A stretch of 63,883 bases of DNA, counting the filler, from Octopus bimaculoides (Eukaryota): NCBI RefSeq assembly GCF_001194135.2. It is 3 parts of 3 records of this genome, joined end to end, with 100 filler letters (N's around TTAATTAATTAA, not from the genome) between each part and the next. Parts side by side here need not be neighbours in the genome. Positions count along the whole stretch, not along the records: positions 23,166 to 51,840 come from NC_068998.1; 2 more parts are not named here. The stretch is one strand, 5' to 3'. The position numbers and the translations under genes were made by a program. Positions 24,097 to 48,292 of the stretch are shown piece after piece. The notes under the pieces were generated by a model. The model saw only the letters and a program-made list of their open reading frames with translations. It was not told the DNA's origin and did no database searches. Position 1 is the stretch's first letter; each line of letters starts with the position of its first letter.

Positions 24097-25434
24097 ATAT
24101 TTTAGTATACATACCTTATAAATTAGCGTTTCGACAATAAAATAGCTGTATATATGTATATACGTATGGCTTCAACACTGTTCACCATTTCTCAAGTATT
24201 AGTGACTCACTAAGTAGTTATCAGCGGGAAACTTTCGTTTAGTAGAAGAAAATCAAAACAAGCTGATACGCAATGGGATCGAACCTGACAATCACACATT
24301 CATGCCGGCACTAGATATATATAACTGATGACGAAGACGATATGTAATTAAGAAATACAGGCAAAGTTGCTATATTGACATTATAAAATCCTTAGCCCCC
24401 AGGAGATGCATATTTATTGAGCAGGCATAGTCTTAAAACATTATAATATCAATAAGGGATATAAGATGTCTGCAATTATAGAAAAATGACAAAATAAAAC
24501 CGCAGTAAGAAAACATGGCGACTGGCAAACAATAGTAATATATTGAGAAAGGCTAGCGCTATTAAACCGATATGGCAGAAATGAGAAATGAAAATGGCAA
24601 TAAAGACAAAGACAAACACACACACACACACACACACATAGCTGATTTTATTTCTATCTTTCTACCTGCCCACGTATTCCTCCATTCATTGTTGCATACA
24701 TTTGTGCGTTCATGCATACATTGTGATGAAGGTATGTCTATATTTATCTAGCTGCCGAACAATCTATCTCTATGCTTATCTCTGTCTCCCTCCATATCTC
24801 AAGTCCCCATACCAACATTATACGTAGAATATATACATCTAAACATCTTACCCCATGCCTACTTAAATACCTATAAATATATCTCAAAGTACCTACCTAC
24901 CTGCCTACCTACATACCTCCCTAACTATGAACCTTCCGTTTTATCGAACAATTTATCGATCCCAAAATTCGTGTATACGTGCTTGCATACCGTTCTACAA
25001 GTATATAACAAACTGCCCTTTTACACATATATGTATACACACACACACACACCCACACACACACACACATACACACACACACACACATANNNNNNNNNNN
25101 NNNNNNNNNNNNNNNNNNNNNNNNNNNNNNNNNNNNNNNNNNNNNNNNNNNNNNNNNNNNNNNNNNNNNNNNNNNNNNNNNNNNNNNNNNNNNNNNNNNN
25201 NNNNNNNNNNNNNNNNNNNNNNNNNNNNNNNNNNNNNNNNNNNNNNNNNNNNNNNNNNNNNNNNNNNNNNNNNNNNNNNNNNNNNNNNNNNNNNNNNNNN
25301 NNNNNNNNNNNNNNNNNNNNNNNNNNNNNNNNNNNNNNNNNNNNNNNNNNNNNNNNNNNNNNNNNNNNNNNNNNNNNNNNNNNNNNNNNNNNNNNNNNNN
25401 NNNNNNNNNNNNNNNNNNNNNNNNNNNNNNNNNN

Positions 25435-25467
<33 letters not shown>

Positions 25468-26279
25468 GTACATATATACATAGATGTATGCGTTTACTTA
25501 CACGCATCCACACCGGCATCCAATCATATCTCACCTCCATACAAATACTCACCACTCTTAGACAAATATAATATATATGTTTACAAAACTCAGTAGAGCC
25601 AGAAGCTAAGAGATTCCAAAATGACAAGAATTAATTTCCTCGGCATGAACAATGGAACCACTCCAAGCACACACACACAGAAAATATATACATACACACA
25701 CATAGGCAAGATATACATACACACACACAGACAAGATATACATATACACACACAGACAAGATATACATATACACACACTCTCTCACACACACTCCCACAC
25801 ACATGTTGGTACAAATGAGAAAGAGACAGGCACACTCACATATGCGTGTGTATGTGTGTATAAGTGTCGGTATGGTTTCGGGTTAGTGTTTATGAATAGT
25901 TTATTGGTTATAGTCTCGTATATGTTTCACCCCCCCCCNNNNNNNNNNNNNNNNNNNNNNNNNNNNNNNNNNNNNNNNNNNNNNNNNNNNNNNNNNNNNN
26001 NNNNNNNNNNNNNNNNNNNNNNNNNNNNNNNNNNNNNNNNNNNNNNNNNNNNNNNNNNNNNNNNNNNNNNNNNNNNNNNNNNNNNNNNNNNNNNNNNNNN
26101 NNNNNNNNNNNNNNNNNNNNNNNNNNNNNNNNNNNNNNNNNNNNNNNNNNNNNNNNNNNNNNNNNNNNNNNNNNNNNNNNNNNNNNNNNNNNNNNNNNNN
26201 NNNNNNNNNNNNNNNNNNNNNNNNNNNNNNNNNNNNNNNNNNNNNNNNNNNNNNNNNNNNNNNNNNNNNNNNNNNNNNN

Positions 26280-28107: not shown

Positions 28108-28240
28108 TTGGCAGGCAGAATCGTTAGCACACCGGGCGAAATGCTTAGCGGTATTTCGTCTGCCGCTATGTTCTGAGTTCAAATTCCGCCGAGGTCGACT
28201 TTCGCCCGGCGTGCTATCAATTCATCCAGCTCGCTGCCTT
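28108..28240 (+). mobile_element. Family B SINE head followed by an inverted copy of its own 5' end (fold-back)
   Basis: gttagcacaccgggcgaaa...gagttcaaattccgccgaggtcgacttt then cgcccggcgtgcta...ccagctcgctgcctt. Confidence 0.75.
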
Positions 28241-29506: not shown

Positions 29507-29968
29507 NNNNNNNNNNNNNNNNNNNNNNNNNNNNNNNNNNNNNNNNNNNNNNNNNNNNNNNNNNNNNNNNNNNNNNNNNNNNNNNNNNNNNNNNNNNNNN
29601 NNNNNNNNNNNNNNNNNNNNNNNNNNNNNNNNNNNNNNNNNNNNNNNNNNNNNNNNNNNNNNNNNNNNNNNNNNNNNNNNNNNNNNNNNNNNNNNNNNNN
29701 NNNNNNNNNNNNNNNNNNNNNNNNNNNNNNNNNNNNNNNNNNNNNNNNNNNNNNNNNNNNNNNNNNNNNNNNNNNNNNNNNNNNNNNNNNNNNNNNNNNN
29801 NNNNNNNNNNNNNNNNNNNNNNNNNNNNNNNNNNNNNNNNNNNNNNNNNNNNNNNNNNNNNNNNNNNNNNNNNNNNNNNNNNNNNNNNNNNNNNNNNNNN
29901 NNNNNNNNNNNNNNNNNNNNNNNNNNNNNNNNNNNNNNNNNNNNNNNNNNNNNNNNNNNNNNNNNNNN

Positions 29969-31730: not shown

Positions 31731-32534
31731 ATACACACATATATATATATACATATATAAAGGTATGTCTGATCGGAATTTCACTTTTCCTCTTTTTTTC
31801 TCCTTTTTCTTTTTCATTTTCGAAAAGAAAAGCTGTACATGTATTTGTCCCGTCAGTGTTCAGCCCTGTGTAGCTAATAAAGAAAGTTATCTATTTATCT
31901 ATATACATATATACATATATACACTATATATGTATATTTATATAATAATATATGTATATCCATTTATATGTATTTATGCATCTATATGCATATATATCTA
32001 TGTGTATGTGTTTGTTTGTTGGTTTGTTTGTGTTATAAATTATTCACAATATTTTTTGTAAGCACGTAATTTTGTCTATATTGTTATCTTTGTATAAAAC
32101 TGTCAAATGTTTAAGCAGGTTTTTTCTTAAATCGTTACTTTTCAAGTGAAGAAGCTATTACGATGATTTCAAAGATGGCATATTTATCTTTTTTCGCAAA
32201 CGTTTGCACCCCATTATGCCTGCATTAGGTATGCCACATTATAGCTGCTGTATACTGCAGCATTTTTATACAATGCATTGTACACGTACACATGCACGCA
32301 TATGCATTCATAATGACTATCAGGGCATTCATACTGACTATCAAAACCTAGATAACATTTGTTTTATTATAAACAGCTGCTAACATTATGTCATTTCTCT
32401 CACATCCCTTTACAGAAGTATGTATTATTGTATGGATATATATACGCGTGTGTGCCTGTGTGTATATGTGTATGTATGCATGCACGCATGTATGTATGTA
32501 TGGATATATCTATGAGCGTGAGTGTGTGTGCCTG

Positions 32535-32582
<48 letters not shown>

Positions 32583-32632
32583 CATATGTACATGCAAACA
32601 CACAAAAACACATCGGCTTATTTAGTGTTATG

Positions 32633-32671
<39 letters not shown>

Positions 32672-32681
32672 NNNNNNNNNN

Positions 32682-32717
<36 letters not shown>

Positions 32718-32965
32718 TGCACACACTCGCACACACATGCATGCATGCATACATACGCACATACGCATGTACGTGTGTGTTTGTATGTTTGTGTGTGCAT
32801 ATCAACACTCCCGTCTATACGTATGTTTTGTATTATACTTTGCATTTAACTATATATCTATGAATGTATAGCTTTCGTCAAGGTCATTATGTTTGTAACC
32901 CTTTTATATTCACCAAATCCCACAGTCATGGGTGTATTGTGAATAAACCACGTTACATTTTAAGG

Positions 32966-33016
<51 letters not shown>

Positions 33017-33137
33017 TATTATTATTATTATTGTTATTATTATTAAATTTCACATAATAAGTGCCGTCAAGAATGAAATCAATATATTGCATTTCTAAAG
33101 CTATTAAATGCATTATATTGCATTCAATGCATTTTAG

Positions 33138-33167
33138 CACCTGGTGCGCATTTTATGAGTATAAAAG
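33138..33167 (+). promoter_or_regulatory. Core promoter of the secreted-peptide gene: E-box CACCTG (33138-33143) and TATA box TATAAAAG (33160-33167)
   Basis: Consensus TATA 91 nt upstream of the ATG at 33251, with an A/C-rich 5'UTR-like stretch and no intervening ATG. Confidence 0.7.
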
Positions 33168-33250
33168 CAAGGGTCTATCTGATTGCATTAACCCACATCA
33201 AACCGCTGCATAACTCTACAACTTCTTCAACAACCAGAAAAACATCCAGG

Positions 33251-33305
33251 ATGAAATTGGTCATCATTCTCTGTCTCTTAATATTGGGCAGCTTCGTAAG
33301 TGCTG
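33251..33305 (+). CDS. Secreted six-Cys peptide gene, exon 1: signal peptide MKLVIILCLLILGSFVSA+G (phase 1)
   Basis: ATG in ccaggATGA context. Classic n/h/c signal peptide ending V-S-A. Donor CTG|GTAAGT at 33306. Confidence 0.88.
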
Positions 33306-33789
33306 GTAAGTAATTCCTCTATTCTGTTCCTTTAACGGTTATTCTATATAACTGGATTAAGTCATTAGATAAAGGCCAGAGATCATGTGGTACGTGAGGG
33401 GTTTAGCTGGTAATTAATGTTTAGTCCCGTGTATTGCCTACCCCTTTTTTTACCGACTTCTTAAATGACGAAATGCAGGTCGGTATTGCATAAAGGAGAA
33501 AAAACCGTGGACATAACTCTTCAAAGCCACTTGAGCATTACATCATTTGCGTCCAAGAGGGGAACGATTCGACAAACATTGGACAAATTGTCAAATTTAG
33601 AAATTCGTCAAGCAAGGCTAAACACTCGTCCTCATGCGGCGAGCGCGCTTCTGCATGAGTGTTTCGATAAGTCACCGTCAGAAAACAACTGTCGCTTTAG
33701 GAACTCCGTTGGCCAGCAGTATATCTGTCATATTTACAATGTACACAGAATCGAACGCCTTTGTGAAATTAACAAAGAGCAATACCAAA

Positions 33790-34225
33790 ACTTTTGTACG
33801 TGTCCCCTACGAAGATCCTTGAAACTATGAAAATCTGTCCAAGAATTTCTGTAAAGTAGTCGTGAAATCGCTACTCTCTATGGTTCAGCATGGACAATGC
33901 ACAAAAGGCTCGAAAAAAAGCTTGATGATGTACAATACAAACAGAAATGATTCATGTGTTTTTTCATCTTTATCAGTAGCAACGACTTACACAGCAGCAA
34001 CTGTATGCCAGTCTTTCTTCCATCACCTGGGTAATCAGAGAAAGAACACGTTATGTATGACACTATTGGAGAAGTAATTTCCGGAGAGTTAGTCTGGAAG
34101 CCTATGTACAGACATACGAGTATTGGCAGTCTAAGAAGAACATATATTGATCAACATGTGGAAGACACTGGATATCAAGTTGAAAATATAAAGACTGCTA
34201 TGGGACATCAGAATGAAGGCTCGAA
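33790..34225 (+). mobile_element. Degenerate 3' end of an RTE-like LINE ORF2, in intron 1 of the peptide gene
   Basis: Broken frames give LYGSAWTMHKRLEKKLD, QQQLYASLSSITWVIRER and LVWKP...RRTYIDQHVEDTG...IKTAM, typical of LINE C-terminal regions. Confidence 0.65.
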
Positions 34226-34653
34226 TTACATCTTTTTCTGGAAAGGCAAAATATTTGATAGAGCAGCGAAACCAGAGACTTCTCTAGTGAAAAAATTCAT
34301 TCTGGCTCTCACATTTATCAGTGAAAGGCTCATGTTCATCCACCATCCCCTTCTCAATAACGTCCCTACCCTTTATTCTGGTTGTATAATCGAGAATTCT
34401 TTCTACTCCTATCTCAACAGGATCATCGAGGTCGTGTGAAGAAGAAACAAATGCCAATGCCCCCCCCCACACACACAAGAGAAACACGCAAACACACAGA
34501 CACAGACACAGACACACACACACAGACAGAGACACACGCACACACATGCATGATGGGCTTCATTTATACGGATACATCATAACTCTTAAGATAAATAATA
34601 CAAATGCATGCTATAGGTGTCAGAAATATTAAAGCTTCATTTCTTTATGTCAG

Positions 34654-34747
34654 TCGACGAGAACGCATGCGTCCAGAAAGCTCATGACTTGTGCCAAACT
34701 GAAGTGAGTAAAGTCGGACCTATCAAAAGCGATGTAGACTCGTGCAG
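34654..34747 (+). CDS. Secreted six-Cys peptide gene, exon 2: VDENACVQKAHDLCQTEVSKVGPIKSDVDSC+AG (phase 1 to 2)
   Basis: Acceptor ttcatttctttatgtcag|, donor CAG|GTAAGT at 34748, 94 nt, open frame with three Cys. Confidence 0.88.
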
Positions 34748-34757
34748 GTAAGTGTAA

Positions 34758-34836
<79 letters not shown>

Positions 34837-35571
34837 GAGCTTCGGCTCATGCTATTTTTATGTTGTATATCTTTGAATCGTTCACAAACTTCCATGCATA
34901 AATAATTTATTAATCCTGATCAATTAGACACACTACTATGTCTGGAAAGGGATCCATCCATCCATCCATCCATCCATCCATCAATACATAAATATGATAC
35001 ATACATACATACATACATACATACATACATACATACATACATACACAGGAGATCCCGACCAAGTTCCTCCACCATAAGAGAGAGAAAATGTTGACAGACA
35101 ACAAATGTAGGCTTTACAAGACCAAGACAGAAGACATCAACACATTGTAGCCAACTGCTAGTGAATATTTTCCACATATTAACTTCGGGATGACTCAGTG
35201 GTCAGAACAGGCTGGGAGAAGATAATAAAAAAAATATTGGTGGAACTTAAAAGTTAAAACAGTCACAAAGTTAAAATATAACCGTCCAGGATTTGTTTTG
35301 TGGGACCACAAGGGACAAATATGATCTGTTGCTAAAGTTAGCTTCCTTCTCAACACAATGTGGTCAGATCAATAGAAGAGACAGCTGATACCTAGTGACC
35401 ATTGGAGTTTATAAATTCAATGCTCAGTATGCACGCTCAGCCTCATAACCACTATTATTGATGCAACAAGATATGTATCAACCTATCTAAAGAAAATATG
35501 GCTAAACTTGAGATCTTGGAGTGAAAATGAACATCCTTAATTCGTACATTACAAATGATCAGGCTCAAATC

Positions 35572-35745
35572 TTTATCGATAATGGATCGAACTGAACTAT
35601 AAACAATCTGCACATCCTGATAACTCACGGATAGTGATTCGACGATTTTCCCTCACAGTTGCACGCACATCTGCGATGTTTTTCTCAGTTCTGCTGGTTG
35701 CGGGTCTCCTAGAACGTTCGTCAATATCGACCTTTTTTCGGCCAT
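35572..35745 (-). mobile_element. Mariner transposase fragment in intron 2 of the peptide gene, same family as 38140-38310
   Basis: Near-identical to 38140-38310 (aatctgcacatcct...gattcgacgattttccctcacag...gatgtttttctcagttct). Confidence 0.7.
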
Positions 35746-35980
35746 TTATGTATGTGTGTAAGTATTTAATCTGTCTGTCTGTCCTTGTTTGTCCCCTCTG
35801 TGTGTAGCCCCTTGTGGGACGTAAAGAAATAAGAGGGAGTGAGGTGGCGAGATAGACGTTTATAAATTAAGAAAATGCGAGGAAAAGTTTCGGCTGGTGC
35901 TCGACAGGAGTGCAGTGAACTGGTTGGGAGTATCACGGTTGAAATTAATTTGATTAAAATATCTTTTTCTTCTCTTTCAG

Positions 35981-36074
35981 GCTCATGAAAATGATGAAAG
36001 AAAAGTGTAAAAAATTAGAGGATGATACCGAGTGTTATAACGTGATGGTTCAACGCCATACAGCCAATTGCTAA
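35981..36074 (+). CDS. Secreted six-Cys peptide gene, exon 3: RLMKMMKEKCKKLEDDTECYNVMVQRHTANC*
   Basis: Strong acceptor atctttttcttctctttcag|. Only the phase-2 frame is long and open. TAA at 36072-36074, three Cys. Confidence 0.88.
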
Positions 36075-36086
36075 AGTAATATCTTA

Positions 36087-36112
36087 AATAAAACAGGTGT
36101 TTTTTCTTTTTC
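36087..36112 (+). terminator. Polyadenylation signal AATAAA with downstream GU/U-rich element for the peptide gene
   Basis: AATAAA at 36087-36092, 12 nt after the stop, followed by caggtgttttttctttt. Confidence 0.7.
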
Positions 36113-36685
36113 TTATAATTATTTCGTCATTTATTATTATTTGTGCAATAATTGATATGGCAAACTGACAGAATCGCTCCAGCGTCGGCCAAAATGTTAA
36201 GGGGTACTTCTTGCAACTATTTAGGGTTATAATTCTAAATAACGCTGGGGTCAACTTTGACATGCTTCTTTTGGACTCGATACGATAAAATATTAGCAAA
36301 GGAGTGGCGTCTATAAAATTAAATTTCCTTCTTCACCTTAAAATTAACCTTCTGCCAAAACTAGAAAGAAGAATTATTTTGTAATAATTGCTGTCGTAGC
36401 ATCAATTCAATGAGCCATATTTTGGAGGAGGAAAGATAAAGTGATTCTAGCAAACCCAGGTGGTCTTGTGTACGTGTATGTACACACGCACACACACAAA
36501 CACACACATACACGCACAAATACATGTGTATGTATGTAGGTTGGTGTACATCTGAGTGTGTATATTTGCCATAACNNNNNNNNNNACACACACACACACA
36601 CACACACATACATATGAATATATGTATATGTCTGTATCTGTGCGTCTGTGTGTGAGTGTTTGTTCATATATTTAATTACACATGT

Positions 36686-37008
36686 GAAGGCGCGTGGCTT
36701 AGTGGTTAGGGCATTCGGCCCGCGATTGTAAGGTTGTGAGTTCAATTTCCGGCGACGAAGCGTGTCCTTCAGCAAGACACTTTATTTCACGTTCCTCCAG
36801 TCCACTCAGCTGGCAAAAATGAGTAGTACCTGTATTTCAAAGGACCGGCCTTGTCATACTCTGTGTCACGCTGAATCTCCCTGAGAACTACGTTAGGGGT
36901 ACACGTGTCTGTGGAATGCTCAGCCACTTGCACGTTAATTTCACGAGTAGGCTGTTCCGTTGATTGGATCAGCTGGAACCTTCGTCGTCGTAACCGACGG
37001 AGTGCTCC
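36686..37008 (+). mobile_element. tRNA-derived SINE family E, CpG-rich, just downstream of the peptide gene
   Basis: A box tggcttagtggttag, B box gagttcaatttcc, central gtgtccttcagcaagacact...ccagtccactcagctg. A decayed reverse copy lies at about 10340-10642. Confidence 0.8.
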
Positions 37009-37210
37009 TTTGTCTAATTATACATAGATGCATGCAAGTATATGTGCATATATATATATATATATATATATANNNNNNNNNNNNNNNNNNNNNNNNNNNN
37101 NNNNNNNNNNNNNNNNNNNNNNNNNNNNNNNNNNNNNNNTATATATGTACATATGTAGATATGTGCATATGTACATATGTGTATTATCCATATGTTTGTA
37201 CAAATATACT

Positions 37211-37255
<45 letters not shown>

Positions 37256-37740
37256 ACCTTTCTCTCTATCTCAACCTGTCAATGCAATACTAGTGAACAT
37301 TACTTAATCCAGACCTATAATTATCTCAGTTTGTATCAAAAACCATCCGGAATTTAGATTACAACCTTATCTAATATGCCGCCAATAAAATATTACACTA
37401 AATTAATATTTTAGCTCTGCGCATTTCAATTTCCAACAGTAAATAATTTAAGTGGATGCATTAAAGAATTTGGTTAATAATACATCATGCTCCTTTGGCA
37501 CAAAGCCCTAATGCTAAATAGATTTAATATTTAGTGAAGGATAACTTAAAGCACTCTATCTCAAATTGAACGTTTAAAATAAAATGCCCACGATATGGAA
37601 AGGAGAACATATTTTACAAGCACGCATAGAATCATAGAGAGGTAGAAGATAGATAGATACATACATTTATATATACATACTTACATACATACTTACATAC
37701 ATACTTACATTCATACATACTTACATATTTACACATACAC

Positions 37741-38390
37741 TAAGTATCCGGCTGTTGCTATAGTAACGACGCTAAAACATTCAAAGTGAAGCCGCTTGGC
37801 ACAGACTGACCTTGAACACTGCTATGCAAGCACACTAACTTTTAACGTTCCAGCTCACTCCCGCTGTTTACAGCAGTCCTTGGAAGGAACAGGTGTAGCA
37901 TGCGATCGTCGCGCTGACCACGACAGAGTAAGTTGAGCGGAGAACCTGATCAAATCTTGCGGAAAACTTGGCGATACCGGGTCAGAGACCTACGGAAATT
38001 TTCAAAAAGTGTTCCTCGTTCTCGACACGATCTAGGAGATCTTGTGCAACTAAAGCTCGAATGTCTCCTTGCTTCTTGGTCAGATGAAAGCAGTTTTGGC
38101 ACAAGTTTTCCAGACACGCGTCACATATTCAAGACTTCAGTGATAATGGACTGAACTGAACCGTAAATAATCTGCACATCCTTTGATAATTCACCGATGG
38201 TGATTCGACGATTTTCCCTCACAGCTGCACGTATATCTGCGATGTTTTTCTCAGTTCTACTGGTTGCTGGACTCTCAGATGTTTCATCAATGTTGACACT
38301 TTTTCGGCCATCTTGGAAACGCCTGAATCATTCGTAAACTTGGGCGCGGCTCATGCACTCGTTTCTATACATTTCCTGAAACTTCGTAGT
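37741..38390. mobile_element. Mariner-type transposon 5' half with an internal inversion
   Basis: + strand to about 38010 reads IKSCGKLGDTGSETY. - strand 38390 to 38010 reads KFQEMYRNECMSRAQVYE*FRRFQDGRKSV...RENRRITIGELS...KLVPKLLS, the mariner N-terminal HTH region. Confidence 0.75.
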
Positions 38391-39334: not shown

Positions 39335-39525
39335 TAAAATTTTGGCAGCGGGTGGGGAGTTAAGCCGATTACATCGACCCCAGTACGCAACTGGTACTTA
39401 ATTTATCGACCCTGAAAGGATGAAAGGCAAAGTCGACCTCGGTGGAATTTGAACTCAGAAATTAAAGACAGACGAAATACCGCTAAGCATTTCGCCTGGT
39501 GTGCTAACATTTCTGCCAGATCGCT
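39335..39525 (-). mobile_element. Family B SINE, CpG-rich copy
   Basis: aaagtcgacctcggtggaatttgaactcag...gacgaaataccgctaagcatttcgcc. Confidence 0.85.
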
Positions 39526-39840
39526 GTGTTTATTGAATAAATAATTAATACAATAGAAATTTCGGAAAGAACAAAAGTTTTTCGAAGAAAACTTATATTC
39601 CCGATTAAAGTCATGGAATGTAATGTTTTATTAACAGCGTATTAACATCTCTTTGGTTTGTGAATAAGAAACGACGGAAACATGCGAAAGTTCAAATATA
39701 AACTTTTAAATTTACGCTGCTGCAGGCATGACAAGTTCTCACCAAGAAAGAAAATGAAACTTGGCTTTCTGAAAAGGAAAACATCATATAACAGCCCTAA
39801 AGCAAATAAACTTATTGAATAATGTCTTGAGATGAATATC

Positions 39841-41355
39841 ACTGTTTCAATCTCGTAGACCATTTCTCATCTACACAATATGTACAGCAACAAACAGATG
39901 TAATTTTCCATTACTTTATAACCATTGAAAAGACAGTGAGGTAATTATATTGAATTCAATTAGGAATTTATTGTTAAAGAAAACTTCTCTTATTCGTTTG
40001 AAATAAAGCATAATTGAAACCCTACAATGTGAAAGATGAAGGTTCTATCGGTTCAATGACTCTCTCGAATTATTGAATAAACTAATTTCTGATAAACTAA
40101 TTTCAGCCAGTGTCAACATTGCCTACAATAAAACTATTTAATTTATTGGAAGAAATGGGACAGAGTAACTAAGTGCAATACAGAGACACAGAAAGGAATG
40201 AATAGATCGATATTCCGATCAAGTGAACCTTCTAACCATTGTGTTATATTTGTTGCTGAATATTCCTGAGCGACGCGTATTCTTAACGTATTTTACTAGA
40301 TGTAGCATGACGCAGGGTACGTCGATTGTGGTCCTCTGAATTGTAGATAATGTCCACCCAGTCTCCGTGTAGCGACGGCCTTATGAGTGTTAAGCAAACT
40401 CGTACACTAGTCGTCCATGATTCACCCTAATAATTTTCATTATTAATCGTTAAAACACAACATAGAGTAATATCTCTTAATACACAGTCAGAACAAAGTT
40501 TAAAATTACTGCCTTTTGTTTTCTTGTCTTATTGACGGTTTGAGGAAATGTTAAGAAATTCACGTTCAGCAATTGGGTGTTAATACCTATTACTCTATGT
40601 TATTATGTTTTAATGTATAATAATGGAAATCACTCGGGTGAATCGATTCGATTTCAGGGCCCCGCGTTTTTATGTCTTGGCAGTCCTGTTTAGCATAACC
40701 TCCAGTTGATCTAGGCACTGTGAGTTAAAATGGTTACCCGGATATTGAGTGGCAGTTCATTAGGACAGTGTCTATAATCCAGAGGACCAACATCCTCACA
40801 CACACATTGCGTTATTTTACATGGAATAGAATCTGTTGAGAATATGCGTCAATGAGGATTATGCCGTAAAAATTAATATATTGCAATGAATAGAGACTTC
40901 ATTTGATCAGCAAGTTTGAATACTCATCATCACAACCGACGGAAAACCTGTTCACTCATGTATGTCGTTCTGTATTGCTCTAAGTTATTCTGTCTTATTG
41001 CTTCCTGTCAATAATGAAGAAGCATTATGAATTATAAATCTCTAATGTTTTAAAGTACAAATATATTTGTTGTATGCAAAGTTGACGCTAACTGAAATTA
41101 GTTTATTAGAAAACCAATATAGTCGATAATTGGTGATAGCCATTGAACCGATAAAATCTTCAGCTTACATATTGTAGGGTTTCAATTATGTTATATTTCA
41201 AATGAATAAAAAAAAAAAAAATTCTTCAACAATAAATTCATAATTGAATTCACAATTACTGAACTGTTATTTTAATGATTAATAAAGTAATGGAAAATTA
41301 CATTTGCTAGTTGCTATTATTTTATGTACATGGGAAATAGAGGAGATTGAAACAG
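39841..41355. repeat. Long diverged inverted repeat: arms about 39841-40140 and 41062-41355, spacer about 920 bp
   Basis: Colinear blocks gatgtaattttccattacttta, cataattgaaaccctacaat, atcggttcaatg and ataaactaatttcag occur inverted in the right arm. Confidence 0.85.
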
Positions 41356-41697
41356 AGCATTTTTCCTCTTAAGACGTTATGTAATAAGACTATTTACTTT
41401 AGGGCGGTATTAATGTTATATGAGGTTTTCCTGTCTACAGAGTAATGTTACATTTCTATTCTAGGAGAGAATCTAATCTGCCTTCAGCCGTATTATTCTG
41501 GAAATTTTAGTAAGAACTTTCGCAAGTTTGCATTTGTTTCCCAAACAGATTTTAGTGCTTAAATATATATGGTACTAATGAAACATTACGTTCAATAGCA
41601 TTGGTTAGAAATATAAGCTTAATTTGACACATATTGTGTTCTTTTCTATTTTTCTATTGTATCAACTTCTTATTCAATACTGAGAATATTCAAAAGT

Positions 41698-41905
41698 GGA
41701 GAGCTGGCAGAAACGTGAGCACGCCGGGCGAAATGCTTAGCAGTATTTCGTCTGTCAACGTTCTGAGTTCAAATTCCGCCGAGGTCGACTTTGCCTTTCA
41801 CCCTTTTGGGGGTCAATAAATTAAATACCAGTTGCGTACTTGGGTCGATCTAATCGTCTGGCTCCCTCCCCTAAAATTTCGGGTCTTGTGCCTAGATTAG
41901 AAAAG
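41698..41905 (+). mobile_element. Family B SINE, full length, sense orientation, CpG-rich
   Basis: A box ctggcagaaacgtgag, B box gagttcaaattcc, body and tail present. Confidence 0.85.
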
Positions 41906-45962: not shown

Positions 45963-47097
45963 TATATGTGTGTGTGTGTGTGTTTGTGTGTTGTGTTTAT
46001 TTGTGTGTGCACTCAAGCGTATGGTGTGTCTATGTATATATTAATACATATTAATATATATATATATATANNNNNNNNNNNNNNNNNNNNNNNNNNNNNN
46101 NNNNNNNNNNNNNNNNNNNNNNNNNNNNNNNNNNNNNNNNNNNNNNNNNNNNNNNNNNNNNNNNNNNNNNNNNNNNNNNNNNNNNNNNNNNNNNNNNNNN
46201 NNNNNNNNNNNNNNNNNNNNNNNNNNNNNNNNNNNNNNNNNNNNNNNNNNNNNNNNNNNNNNNNNNNNNNNNNNNNNNNNNNNNNNNNNNNNNNNNNNNN
46301 NNNNNNNNNNNNNNNNNNNNNNNNNNNNNNNNNNNNNNNNNNNNNNNNNNNNNNNNNNNNNNNNNNNNNNNNNNNNNNNNNNNNNNNNNNNNNNNNNNNN
46401 NNNNNNNNNNNNNNNNNNNNNNNNNNNNNNNNNNNNNNNNNNNNNNNNNNNNNNNNNNNNNNNNNNNNNNNNNNNNNNNNNNNNNNNNNNNNNNNNNNNN
46501 NNNNNNNNNNNNNNNNNNNNNNNNNNNNNNNNNNNNNNNNNNNNNNNNNNNNNNNNNNNNNNNNNNNNNNNNNNNNNNNNNNNNNNNNNNNNNNNNNNNN
46601 NNNNNNNNNNNNNNNNNNNNNNNNNNNNNNNNNNNNNNNNNNNNNNNNNNNNNNNNNNNNNNNNNNNNNNNNNNNNNNNNNNNNNNNNNNNNNNNNNNNN
46701 NNNNNNNNNNNNNNNNNNNNNNNNNNNNNNNNNNNNNNNNNNNNNNNNNNNNNNNNNNNNNNNNNNNNNNNNNNNNNNNNNNNNNNNNNNNNNNNNNNNN
46801 NNNNNNNNNNNNNNNNNNNNNNNNNNNNNNNNNNNNNNNNNNNNNNNTATATATCCTTTATATTATATATATTGTATAATTGATGAAGAAAGTGAGGAGG
46901 TATGGGGGTAATATATCTTATACACCCCCAATGAAATAATCGTCACCAACTGGTTTTATTGGATTTTTATCTGCATCAGATTATACATTTCAGTCCGTTG
47001 TTTTGTTCCGGTTTACTATGCGGTTTGTAACCTGATCCATTAAGGGAGCTTTTTCTGAGTACTACTGGATTAGTCAAAGCCGTATATTGTGCTTTGA

Positions 47098-47405: not shown

Positions 47406-48084
47406 ATATNNNNNNNNNNNNNNNNNNNNNNNNNNNNNNNNNNNNNNNNNNNNNNNNNNNNNNNNNNNNNNNNNNNNNNNNNNNNNTATATATATATATA
47501 TATATATGTACATATATGCCCAGGCGTTGCGCGTGTATGTGCTAGAAGCCTGCTTCCCAACCACATGGTTCTAGGTTTACTCCCTTGAACAGGCCTTGTG
47601 AATGCATTGGGTTTGCTTTCTAAATACTATTGACCAATTTTAAATATTATTGGAACTTAATCAAAAGGTACGAGGAATCTTATATGTATACCATTCTGCC
47701 TTAATAATGGAACTGAAGATACAGTATCCCTGCATATCTCACGTCTGTTTTCATTCCTCCACTTCACTCTCTATATCATATCTTATCTGGAATAACTATT
47801 GCTTAACCATCTCCTCACACCGTCTCCGATGAAGGGATATTATGAAATATCACAGAAACAACTGCATGACCCTCTATTTATAAATGTTCGGAAATCTTTC
47901 ACTGCCTCGGATTTTTATCTCATCCTGTTAATTTTTTTTATATATACACATCTTTCAGAAGAGTAAAGTACAATGTAAATATGGTTTTAGCGGGGATTAT
48001 GTTTAGTATGCTCAATGCGTCACGTGGTGACATCTGGAGAATAACGGCATACATACAAGTACGAGAATTATATAATCAATAGTC

Positions 48085-48292
48085 ATTCCTACTGAAACCA
48101 CAAGACCTGGAATTTAAGTGCAGGGGGATAGTCGGTCACATCGAACCCAGTACCTGACTGGTACTTAATTTATCGGCCCCGAAAGGATGAAAGGCAAAGT
48201 CGACCTCGGCGGACTCAGAAGGTTGTGGCTGACAAAATACCGCTAAGCATTTCGCCTGGTGTGCTAACCATTCTGCCACCTCGCCACCTTAA
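48085..48292 (-). mobile_element. Family B SINE, CpG-rich copy
   Basis: tttatcggccccgaaaggatgaaaggcaaagtcgacctcggcgg...ataccgctaagcatttcgcc. Confidence 0.85.

Follow-up and report, generated by a model that had tools for sequence, protein, structure and literature searches.

The window analyzed here is a 63,883-nucleotide (nt) stretch of Octopus bimaculoides DNA (RefSeq assembly GCF_001194135.2), made of three parts joined by filler. Its 28.7-kb part from NC_068998.1 (positions 23,166 to 51,840) bears what is, judged against a second octopus species, a real, unannotated three-exon gene whose secreted product is a short peptide with six cysteines. Overall, we consider it likely that this is a functional gene of the octopus lineage, whose product would be a secreted, disulfide-locked helical mini-protein evolving fast against a partner. 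A sequence-only reading of the window had already proposed such a hidden gene, with an 80-amino-acid (aa) secreted six-cysteine product, and the proposal is now strongly supported by an intact orthologue in Octopus vulgaris that keeps all six cysteines. Comparisons throughout are between the window and O. vulgaris, and positions are those of the window unless stated otherwise.

Re-reading positions 33100-36300 and rebuilding the coding sequence by script reproduced to the base the elements first described there, i.e., a TATA box, three exons with GT-AG sites in phases 1 and then 2, a stop codon and an AATAAA (Table 1), and the spliced product of the three exons was the identical 80-aa protein. 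The cysteines of the mature peptide follow the pattern C-x7-C-x16-C-x9-C-x8-C-x11-C, in which the third gap measures nine residues rather than the eight first counted, all other gaps standing as read. An initiator-like CCACATC (33193-33199) lies between the TATA box and the start codon, which has an A at -3. Both donors read G/GTAAGT, and the acceptor sides are ttctttatgtcAG for exon 2 and ttcttctctttcAG for exon 3; of two tandem GTAAGT sites, only the donor at 33306 keeps the frame open into exon 2. When both strands of the 28.7-kb piece were scanned by rule (ATG, signal-peptide-like first exon, GTRAGT donors, pyrimidine-rich acceptors, frame-compatible internal exon, terminal exon, AATAAA), this locus was the sole match, and none of 300 simulated versions of the piece (order-3 Markov) yielded a match. 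The scan also accepts an alternative splicing of this locus (33251-33295 / 34654-34703 / 35981-36074). This alternative relies on a donor at 34704 whose GTGAGT is replaced by GTCAGC in O. vulgaris, and because this donor is not conserved there, we prefer the model as first read. The piece showed no further convincing gene.

The orthologous locus was reached through a control query for the cephalopod content of the protein collection, an open frame of 134 aa within intron 1 (34035-34436), whose only match was P0002, annotated as “Hypothetical predicted protein [Octopus vulgaris]” and 85 aa long. Its contig led to a 20-kb locus (L001; GCA_951406725.2, OX597831.1:19518149-19538406, reversed), which is colinear with window positions 31770-37965 by BLASTN and is therefore taken as orthologous. 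All three exons of the peptide gene are present there by tblastn, with the same lengths (55, 94, and 94 nt), phases, ATG, GTAAGT donors and TAA codon position, and with CAG and TAG as acceptors. The TATA box is identical (TATAAAAG, L001 9119, 90 nt 5' of the ATG), and an AATAAA (L001 17848) follows the stop codon at the same distance as in the window, 13 nt. The O. vulgaris protein is MKLAIILCLVILGSFVSAVDEAACVTKAHNLCASQVSQVGPIKGNSDSCRLLKMMKNDCEDLKANTECYNVMVNRHKNNC, which is identical to that of the window at 16/18 residues of the signal peptide and 41/62 residues of the mature part (66%), including 6/6 cysteines. The introns are colinear as well, at ~90% identity for intron 1 and 86–87% for intron 2, and are longer in O. 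vulgaris (3853 and 4531 nt vs. 1348 and 1233 nt).

Measured against neutral expectation, this conservation is hard to obtain by drift. As neutral background we used the 4533 alignable non-coding columns around and inside the gene, in which 10.9% of positions differ and gaps open at 0.0115 per base, and simulated neutral substitution on the window coding sequence. The probability that the ATG, open frame, stop, four splice dinucleotides and six cysteine codons all survive was 0.013 at the 10.9% non-coding rate and 4.7e-4 at the 18.9% rate observed in the coding sequence, and that of finding no indel in 243 nt was 0.06, for a joint neutral probability of the preserved gene of ~8e-4 to 3e-5. From start to stop codon, the open frame, its splice sites and the lengths of its exons are thus kept beyond neutral expectation, and since neutral drift would rarely keep all of these signals, the gene is best read as functional and protein-coding, with purifying selection evidently holding its frame, splicing and cysteines.

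Within this fixed frame, the mature peptide has changed faster than the DNA around it. Leaving aside the 54 nt of signal-peptide coding sequence, 43 of 186 nt differ in the mature region (23%), against 494 of 4533 in non-coding DNA (10.9%; Fisher p = 3e-6). The two cysteine-bearing exons differ at 22/94 nt (23.4%, exon 2) and 21/91 sense nt (23.1%, exon 3), each with 3/3 cysteines kept, and the signal exon is the slowest-evolving part of the gene (3/55 nt differ, i.e., 5.5%, with 52/55 identical). Hypermutability of CpG sites does not account for the fast exons, as the excess persists at non-CpG sites (22.7% mature vs. 9.8% non-coding, p = 2.4e-6). Non-synonymous differences alone (31/152 sites) are more frequent than the intron rate predicts (binomial p = 4e-4), and 21 of the 62 mature residues are replaced, with charge altered in 12 of these 21 and two or three bases differing in 11 of the 21 replaced codons. 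The replacements cluster at residues 39–47 (EKCKKLEDD in the window vs. NDCEDLKAN in O. vulgaris), 15–17 and 26–28; three blocks (VGPIK, DSCRLxKMMK, and TECYNVMVxRH) are invariant. Broadly speaking, the peptide thus has an even number of cysteines, all conserved (6/6), amid variable residues (35/56 of the others identical), and a mature region that has outpaced both its signal region and neutral DNA, positive selection not being proven at the ratio of non-synonymous to synonymous substitution given below.

The signal peptide was recognized by simple rules: its n-region is MK, its hydrophobic core spans 13 residues, V-S-A occupies -3 to -1, and it is accepted by the crude rule of the scan. Cleavage after Ala18 would leave a mature peptide of 62 aa and 7.1 kDa, with an isoelectric point (pI) of 6.1 in the window (10 basic and 11 acidic residues) and 7.75 in O. 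vulgaris. No KR/RR convertase site, amidation signal or N-x-S/T sequon occurs in the peptide sequence, from which we infer no further processing; tryptic peptides of the mature product include AHDLCQTEVSK and LEDDTECYNVMVQR. AlphaFold, run on the single sequence, placed helices at residues 3–21, 27–41, and 48–61, which makes the helix-proneness noted earlier plausible, and the predicted helices are not significantly amphipathic.

It is thus tempting to assemble these features into one putative route, in which secretion and cleavage at the predicted site, disulfide formation, helical folding and any role are presumed. A TATA-box promoter would drive a three-exon transcript for the 80-aa precursor, whose 18-residue signal peptide would direct co-translational entry into the endoplasmic reticulum and be cut off after Ala18. 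Oxidation to three disulfides would then lock the three predicted helices, and a single near-neutral peptide would be released, with no pro-region and one product per precursor. The cysteine scaffold, signal peptide and three invariant blocks are held constant, and surface positions turn over at about twice the rate of neutral DNA, often reversing charge and most of all around Cys41 (residues 39–47). A fixed scaffold with a fast, charge-swapping surface suggests an extracellular ligand or effector tracking a changing partner. A conspecific receptor (i.e., a reproductive or chemosensory cue) seems a quite possible partner, a target in prey or predators (salivary venom or defence) a somewhat less probable one, and microbes a rather unlikely one, the remaining probability falling to something else.

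Several points weigh against this interpretation. Splicing and secretion are predicted from sequence, with the signal peptide called by simple rules, and the peptide is absent from a collection of 5.8 billion proteins even though the O. vulgaris annotation is part of it. The AlphaFold model is of low confidence, which leaves the fold and disulfide pairing tentative, with a predicted local distance difference test score (pLDDT) of 65.6 and a predicted template modeling score (pTM) of 0.40. Classical dN/dS of the mature part is 0.50 (dN 0.238, dS 0.477), not above 1, and silent changes are present in 9 of the 41 codons whose residue is unchanged; the ratio is this low because silent sites are fast too. 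The acceleration could therefore have arisen otherwise than by positive selection, through gene conversion by paralogues not seen here, balanced alleles that coalesce deeply, or local hypermutation. Silent sites of the mature exons (34654-34747, 35981-36071) look ~2–3 times faster than introns 33306-34653 and 34748-35980; gene conversion, balanced alleles, hypermutation and multi-base replacements are candidate contributors to this, and two sequences cannot separate diversifying selection from exon-limited gene conversion, deep allelic coalescence or local hypermutation.

Database searches place the peptide outside known families. A word-indexed search of the 5.8 billion proteins returned no match for either the single protein or a two-orthologue profile, and since that collection includes the O. 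vulgaris annotation, no pipeline appears to have called the gene. Among 1.84 billion representatives searched exhaustively with phmmer, the only match was P0001, which we judged an artefact: in this 2270-aa protein of 14 near-identical repeats, a weak per-repeat match without aligned cysteines is summed 14 times. Pfam yielded nothing below E = 0.1, only noise (Ibs_toxin and Bfc at E > 0.1), sequence searches of the PDB with the peptide nothing meaningful, and exact-pattern scans of metagenomes for the conserved exon strings nothing at all. Peptide substrings of both orthologues occurred in no paper searched as full text, and literature searches on octopus cysteine-rich and venom peptides and on the octopus sperm attractant turned up nothing comparable, the Octo-SAP sequence itself not having been directly compared. 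The searched collection draws on UniRef, and a relative among the UniRef entries would probably have matched; this would apply to Octo-SAP if the collection contains it. Paralogues, for which a tblastn search had been suggested, were absent from the 28.7-kb window piece and the 20-kb O. vulgaris locus, the two stretches searched. The peptide thus appears to be a new family within a familiar class, so far seen only in the genus Octopus, and by sequence and cysteine framework belongs to none of the systems compared here.

Foremost among these systems are the helical three-disulfide pheromones, to which the peptide had been likened as resembling waterborne protein pheromones. The sequences of Euplotes raikovi Er-1 and Aplysia attractin used for that comparison are correct against the PDB (1erc, 1t50). 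With Er-1, Er-10, and Er-13 (1erc, 1erp, 6e6n) the peptide shares general features: all are small and secreted, with six cysteines and three helices (the latter a low-confidence prediction for the octopus peptide), and the Er pheromones also vary strongly from one allele or species to another while their cysteine frame stays fixed. Attractin is likewise helical, of ~6–7 kDa and with six cysteines. The C-x8-C-Y segment said to be shared with Er-1 does occur in both. The remaining cysteine spacings differ, being 7,16,9,8,11 in the 62-aa octopus peptide, 6,4,3,8,7 in Er-1, 6,4,3,7,9 in Er-10, 6,5,3,9,7 in Er-13, and 8,6,5,6,7 in attractin. Smith-Waterman scores, compared with those of shuffled sequences, were non-significant throughout: 5–8% of shuffles reached the score of Er-1, 34% that of Er-10, 99% that of Er-13, and 65% that of attractin, whose alignment score of 26 lies below the shuffle mean of 28.4. 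The echo of Er-1 read at the C-terminal side falls among the variable residues, KKLEDD being replaced by EDLKAN in O. vulgaris, where 19.5% of shuffles reach the Er-1 score (p = 0.2). Pfam, which should hold both families, gave no match (E <= 10 for the Er family), and Foldseek with the low-confidence model retrieved only generic or designed helical bundles from the PDB (E > 3), not 1erc or 1t50, although both are there.

The octopus peptide therefore lacks what marks the Er family, i.e., sequence or profile similarity and 38–40 residues with cysteines spaced ~6, 4–5, 3, 7–9, and 7–9 apart. The Er fold is a three-helix bundle with disulfides I-IV, II-VI, and III-V, and Er pheromones are ciliate proteins made as pre-pro-precursors, whereas the octopus gene is an intron-split metazoan gene without a pro-segment. 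Attractins conserve the helix motif IEECKTS, which is absent from the octopus peptide along with attractin-like similarity and spacing. We thus reject membership in the Er or attractin families as far as these comparisons reach, and regard a relative or close structural analogue of such pheromones as highly improbable. Fast evolution limited to the exons is consistent with the broader suggestion of a secreted peptide of the cephalopod lineage with a role in signalling, in venom or in association with eggs.

Further comparisons lie within cephalopods and in the mode of evolution. The Sepia officinalis candidate sex pheromones SP-alpha and SP-beta are also secreted, cysteine-containing cephalopod peptides without homologues outside their lineage; their precursors of 248–252 aa each yield five or six peptides by cleavage at dibasic sites, with amidation of some (PMC3484142). 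The octopus peptide differs in its 80-aa precursor with one product, and showed no similarity to them in database searches. In mode of evolution alone, the closest parallels are conopeptide and snake-venom genes and fast-evolving reproductive or pheromone proteins. Conopeptide and snake-venom genes share a conserved signal and cysteine framework around a hypervariable mature region, and exons that diverge faster than adjacent introns, silent sites included. Unlike these toxin genes, the octopus gene matches no toxin family in sequence or framework, has no pro-region, splits its cysteines over two exons and is apparently single-copy locally.

These parallels bear on what the peptide might do. 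A salivary-gland venom or defensive toxin, caught in a conopeptide-like arms race with prey or predator targets, would explain a conserved signal exon, mature exons faster than introns and a retained cysteine frame, a pattern also described for the genes of conotoxins and of snake-venom PLA2. Tandem arrays are common among toxin genes, however, and neither the 28.7-kb window piece nor the 20-kb O. vulgaris locus contains a paralogue; no known toxin family was matched, and a paper on cephalopod venom mentions nothing similar. We give this explanation a modest chance. A modest chance of the same order goes to a new octopus-specific family of protein signals, i.e., a species-specific waterborne or contact pheromone or a ligand of gamete or mate recognition, no such peptide pheromone being known from octopods. 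An antimicrobial or immune effector would equally be small, secreted, disulfide-stabilized, lineage-restricted and fast-evolving. Most antimicrobial peptides are clearly cationic and amphipathic, and the near-neutral charge in both species (pI 6.1 and 7.75) and the lack of significant amphipathicity in the predicted helices make this role improbable. Among the candidate roles of pheromone, reproductive protein, venom component and immune effector, a locally single-copy gene with a near-neutral, non-amphipathic product leans slightly away from a tandem venom family and a cationic antimicrobial, and slightly, as a weak inference, towards a recognition cue between individuals.

Two further explanations were considered. 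A small product with cysteines behind a signal peptide could also point to a conserved neuropeptide or hormone precursor of an unrecognized family, but 66% mature identity between congeners and exons faster than introns are unlike receptor-constrained hormones, convertase sites and an amidation signal are missing, and the searches found no homologue outside Octopus; we regard this as very improbable. Finally, a non-functional locus, be it signals aligned by chance, a pseudogene or a transcript that does not code for protein, would fit the lack of annotation in the O. vulgaris locus and the absence of the peptide from all searched protein collections. Against it stand the start and stop codons with the open frame between them, the four splice sites, the exon lengths and the six cysteines, all kept despite a 19% difference in coding bases, and the lack of any comparable model among the 300 simulated pieces, which leave the non-functional alternative scarcely credible. 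A functional, secreted and fast-evolving peptide gene thus remains the reading we favor.

Table 1. Coordinates of the peptide gene, its O. vulgaris counterpart, and other features of the 28.7-kb piece (window positions, except for the O. vulgaris exons).
Feature	Position	Strand	Description
TATA box (TATAAAAG)	33160-33167	+	91 nt 5' of ATG; presumed promoter role
Core promoter and putative 5' untranslated region	33168-33250	+	presumed transcription start; ~90% identity with O. vulgaris, the background level
Exon 1, coding part	33251-33305	+	55 nt, ATG at 33251, phase 1; signal peptide MKLVIILCLLILGSFVSA and first base of Val19
Intron 1	33306-34653	+	1348 nt, GTAAGT...CAG; repeat debris, CA-rich microsatellite
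Exon 2	34654-34747	+	94 nt, phase 2; mature residues 1–31, VDENACVQKAHDLCQTEVSKVGPIKSDVDSC and 2 nt of Arg; Cys 1–3
Intron 2	34748-35980	+	1233 nt, GTAAGT...CAG; microsatellites and interspersed repeat inside
Exon 3, coding part	35981-36074	+	94 nt; mature residues 32–62, (R)LMKMMKEKCKKLEDDTECYNVMVQRHTANC; Cys 4–6; TAA at 36072-36074
Poly(A) signal AATAAA	36087-36092	+	13 nt past stop codon
O. vulgaris exons 1–3	OX597831.1 19529198-19529144, 19525290-19525197, 19520665-19520572	minus	
Short interspersed repeat copies	28111-28202, 39363-39524, 41693-41890, 48099-48290		
Six N-run gaps	25090-25434, 25939-26279, 29507-29968, 37073-37139, 46071-46847, 47410-47486		67–777 nt, mostly TA/CA-microsatellite-flanked

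The introns and their surroundings are rich in repeats. A perfect (TAC)25 microsatellite (34760-34834) begins 13 nt past the exon 2 donor, and the O. vulgaris intron 2 opens likewise (GTAAGTGTAAACTACTACTA); CCAT and CATA repeats follow at ~34952-35046 in intron 2, and a CA/CAGA-rich tract lies at ~34468-34545 in intron 1. An interspersed repeat occurs as two direct copies, 83% identical, at 35565-35745 (within intron 2) and 38129-38311; its minus-strand translation (…RRPATSRTEKNIADVRATVRENRRITIRELS…) was considered as the N-terminal helix-turn-helix of a mariner-type transposase, which Pfam did not confirm. Similarly, a broken minus-strand frame in intron 1 (33480-33800, …LLFVNFTKAFDSVYIVNMTDILLANGVPKATV…), considered as the reverse-transcriptase motif of a long interspersed nuclear element, had no Pfam match. 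A family of short interspersed repeats (~90–200 nt, 77–90% identical) is present in at least four copies in both orientations, and also in the O. vulgaris locus, and an inverted 0.8-kb pair (39363-40139 vs. 41059-41859) is 74% identical. The microsatellite-flanked N-run gaps indicate a short-read scaffold assembly. In O. vulgaris, the intron excess consists of blocks of ~2.5 kb and 3.1 kb (L001 10386-12942 and 14492-17594) without counterpart in the window, which could be insertions there, or deletions or assembly collapse in the window genome.

The 85-aa protein that led to the O. vulgaris locus is the sole gene called in its 20 kb. It spans L001 10001-10258 (window counterpart ~34053-34300, + strand), wholly within intron 1 and on the same strand as the peptide gene. 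Without any Pfam domain, it resembles a false gene call in sequence derived from repeats, and may represent the longest open reading frame of the unspliced peptide-gene transcript, which would hint at transcription of the locus.

That the O. vulgaris annotation calls this open reading frame inside intron 1 yet misses the peptide gene around it illustrates how routinely genome annotation overlooks small, taxon-restricted secreted peptides, the group among which toxins, pheromones and gamete-recognition proteins are usually found. The locus now has a precise gene model validated across species and a defined mature product that can be synthesized, together with a clear evolutionary signature of a fixed cysteine frame and exons outpacing introns. 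It also offers a clean case of exon-limited acceleration that includes silent sites, the cause of which is still debated for conopeptides. If the peptide did belong to an octopus-specific family of signals, species identity would lie in the hypervariable residues around Cys41, to be read by a co-evolving receptor, e.g., among the expanded chemotactile receptors of octopuses.

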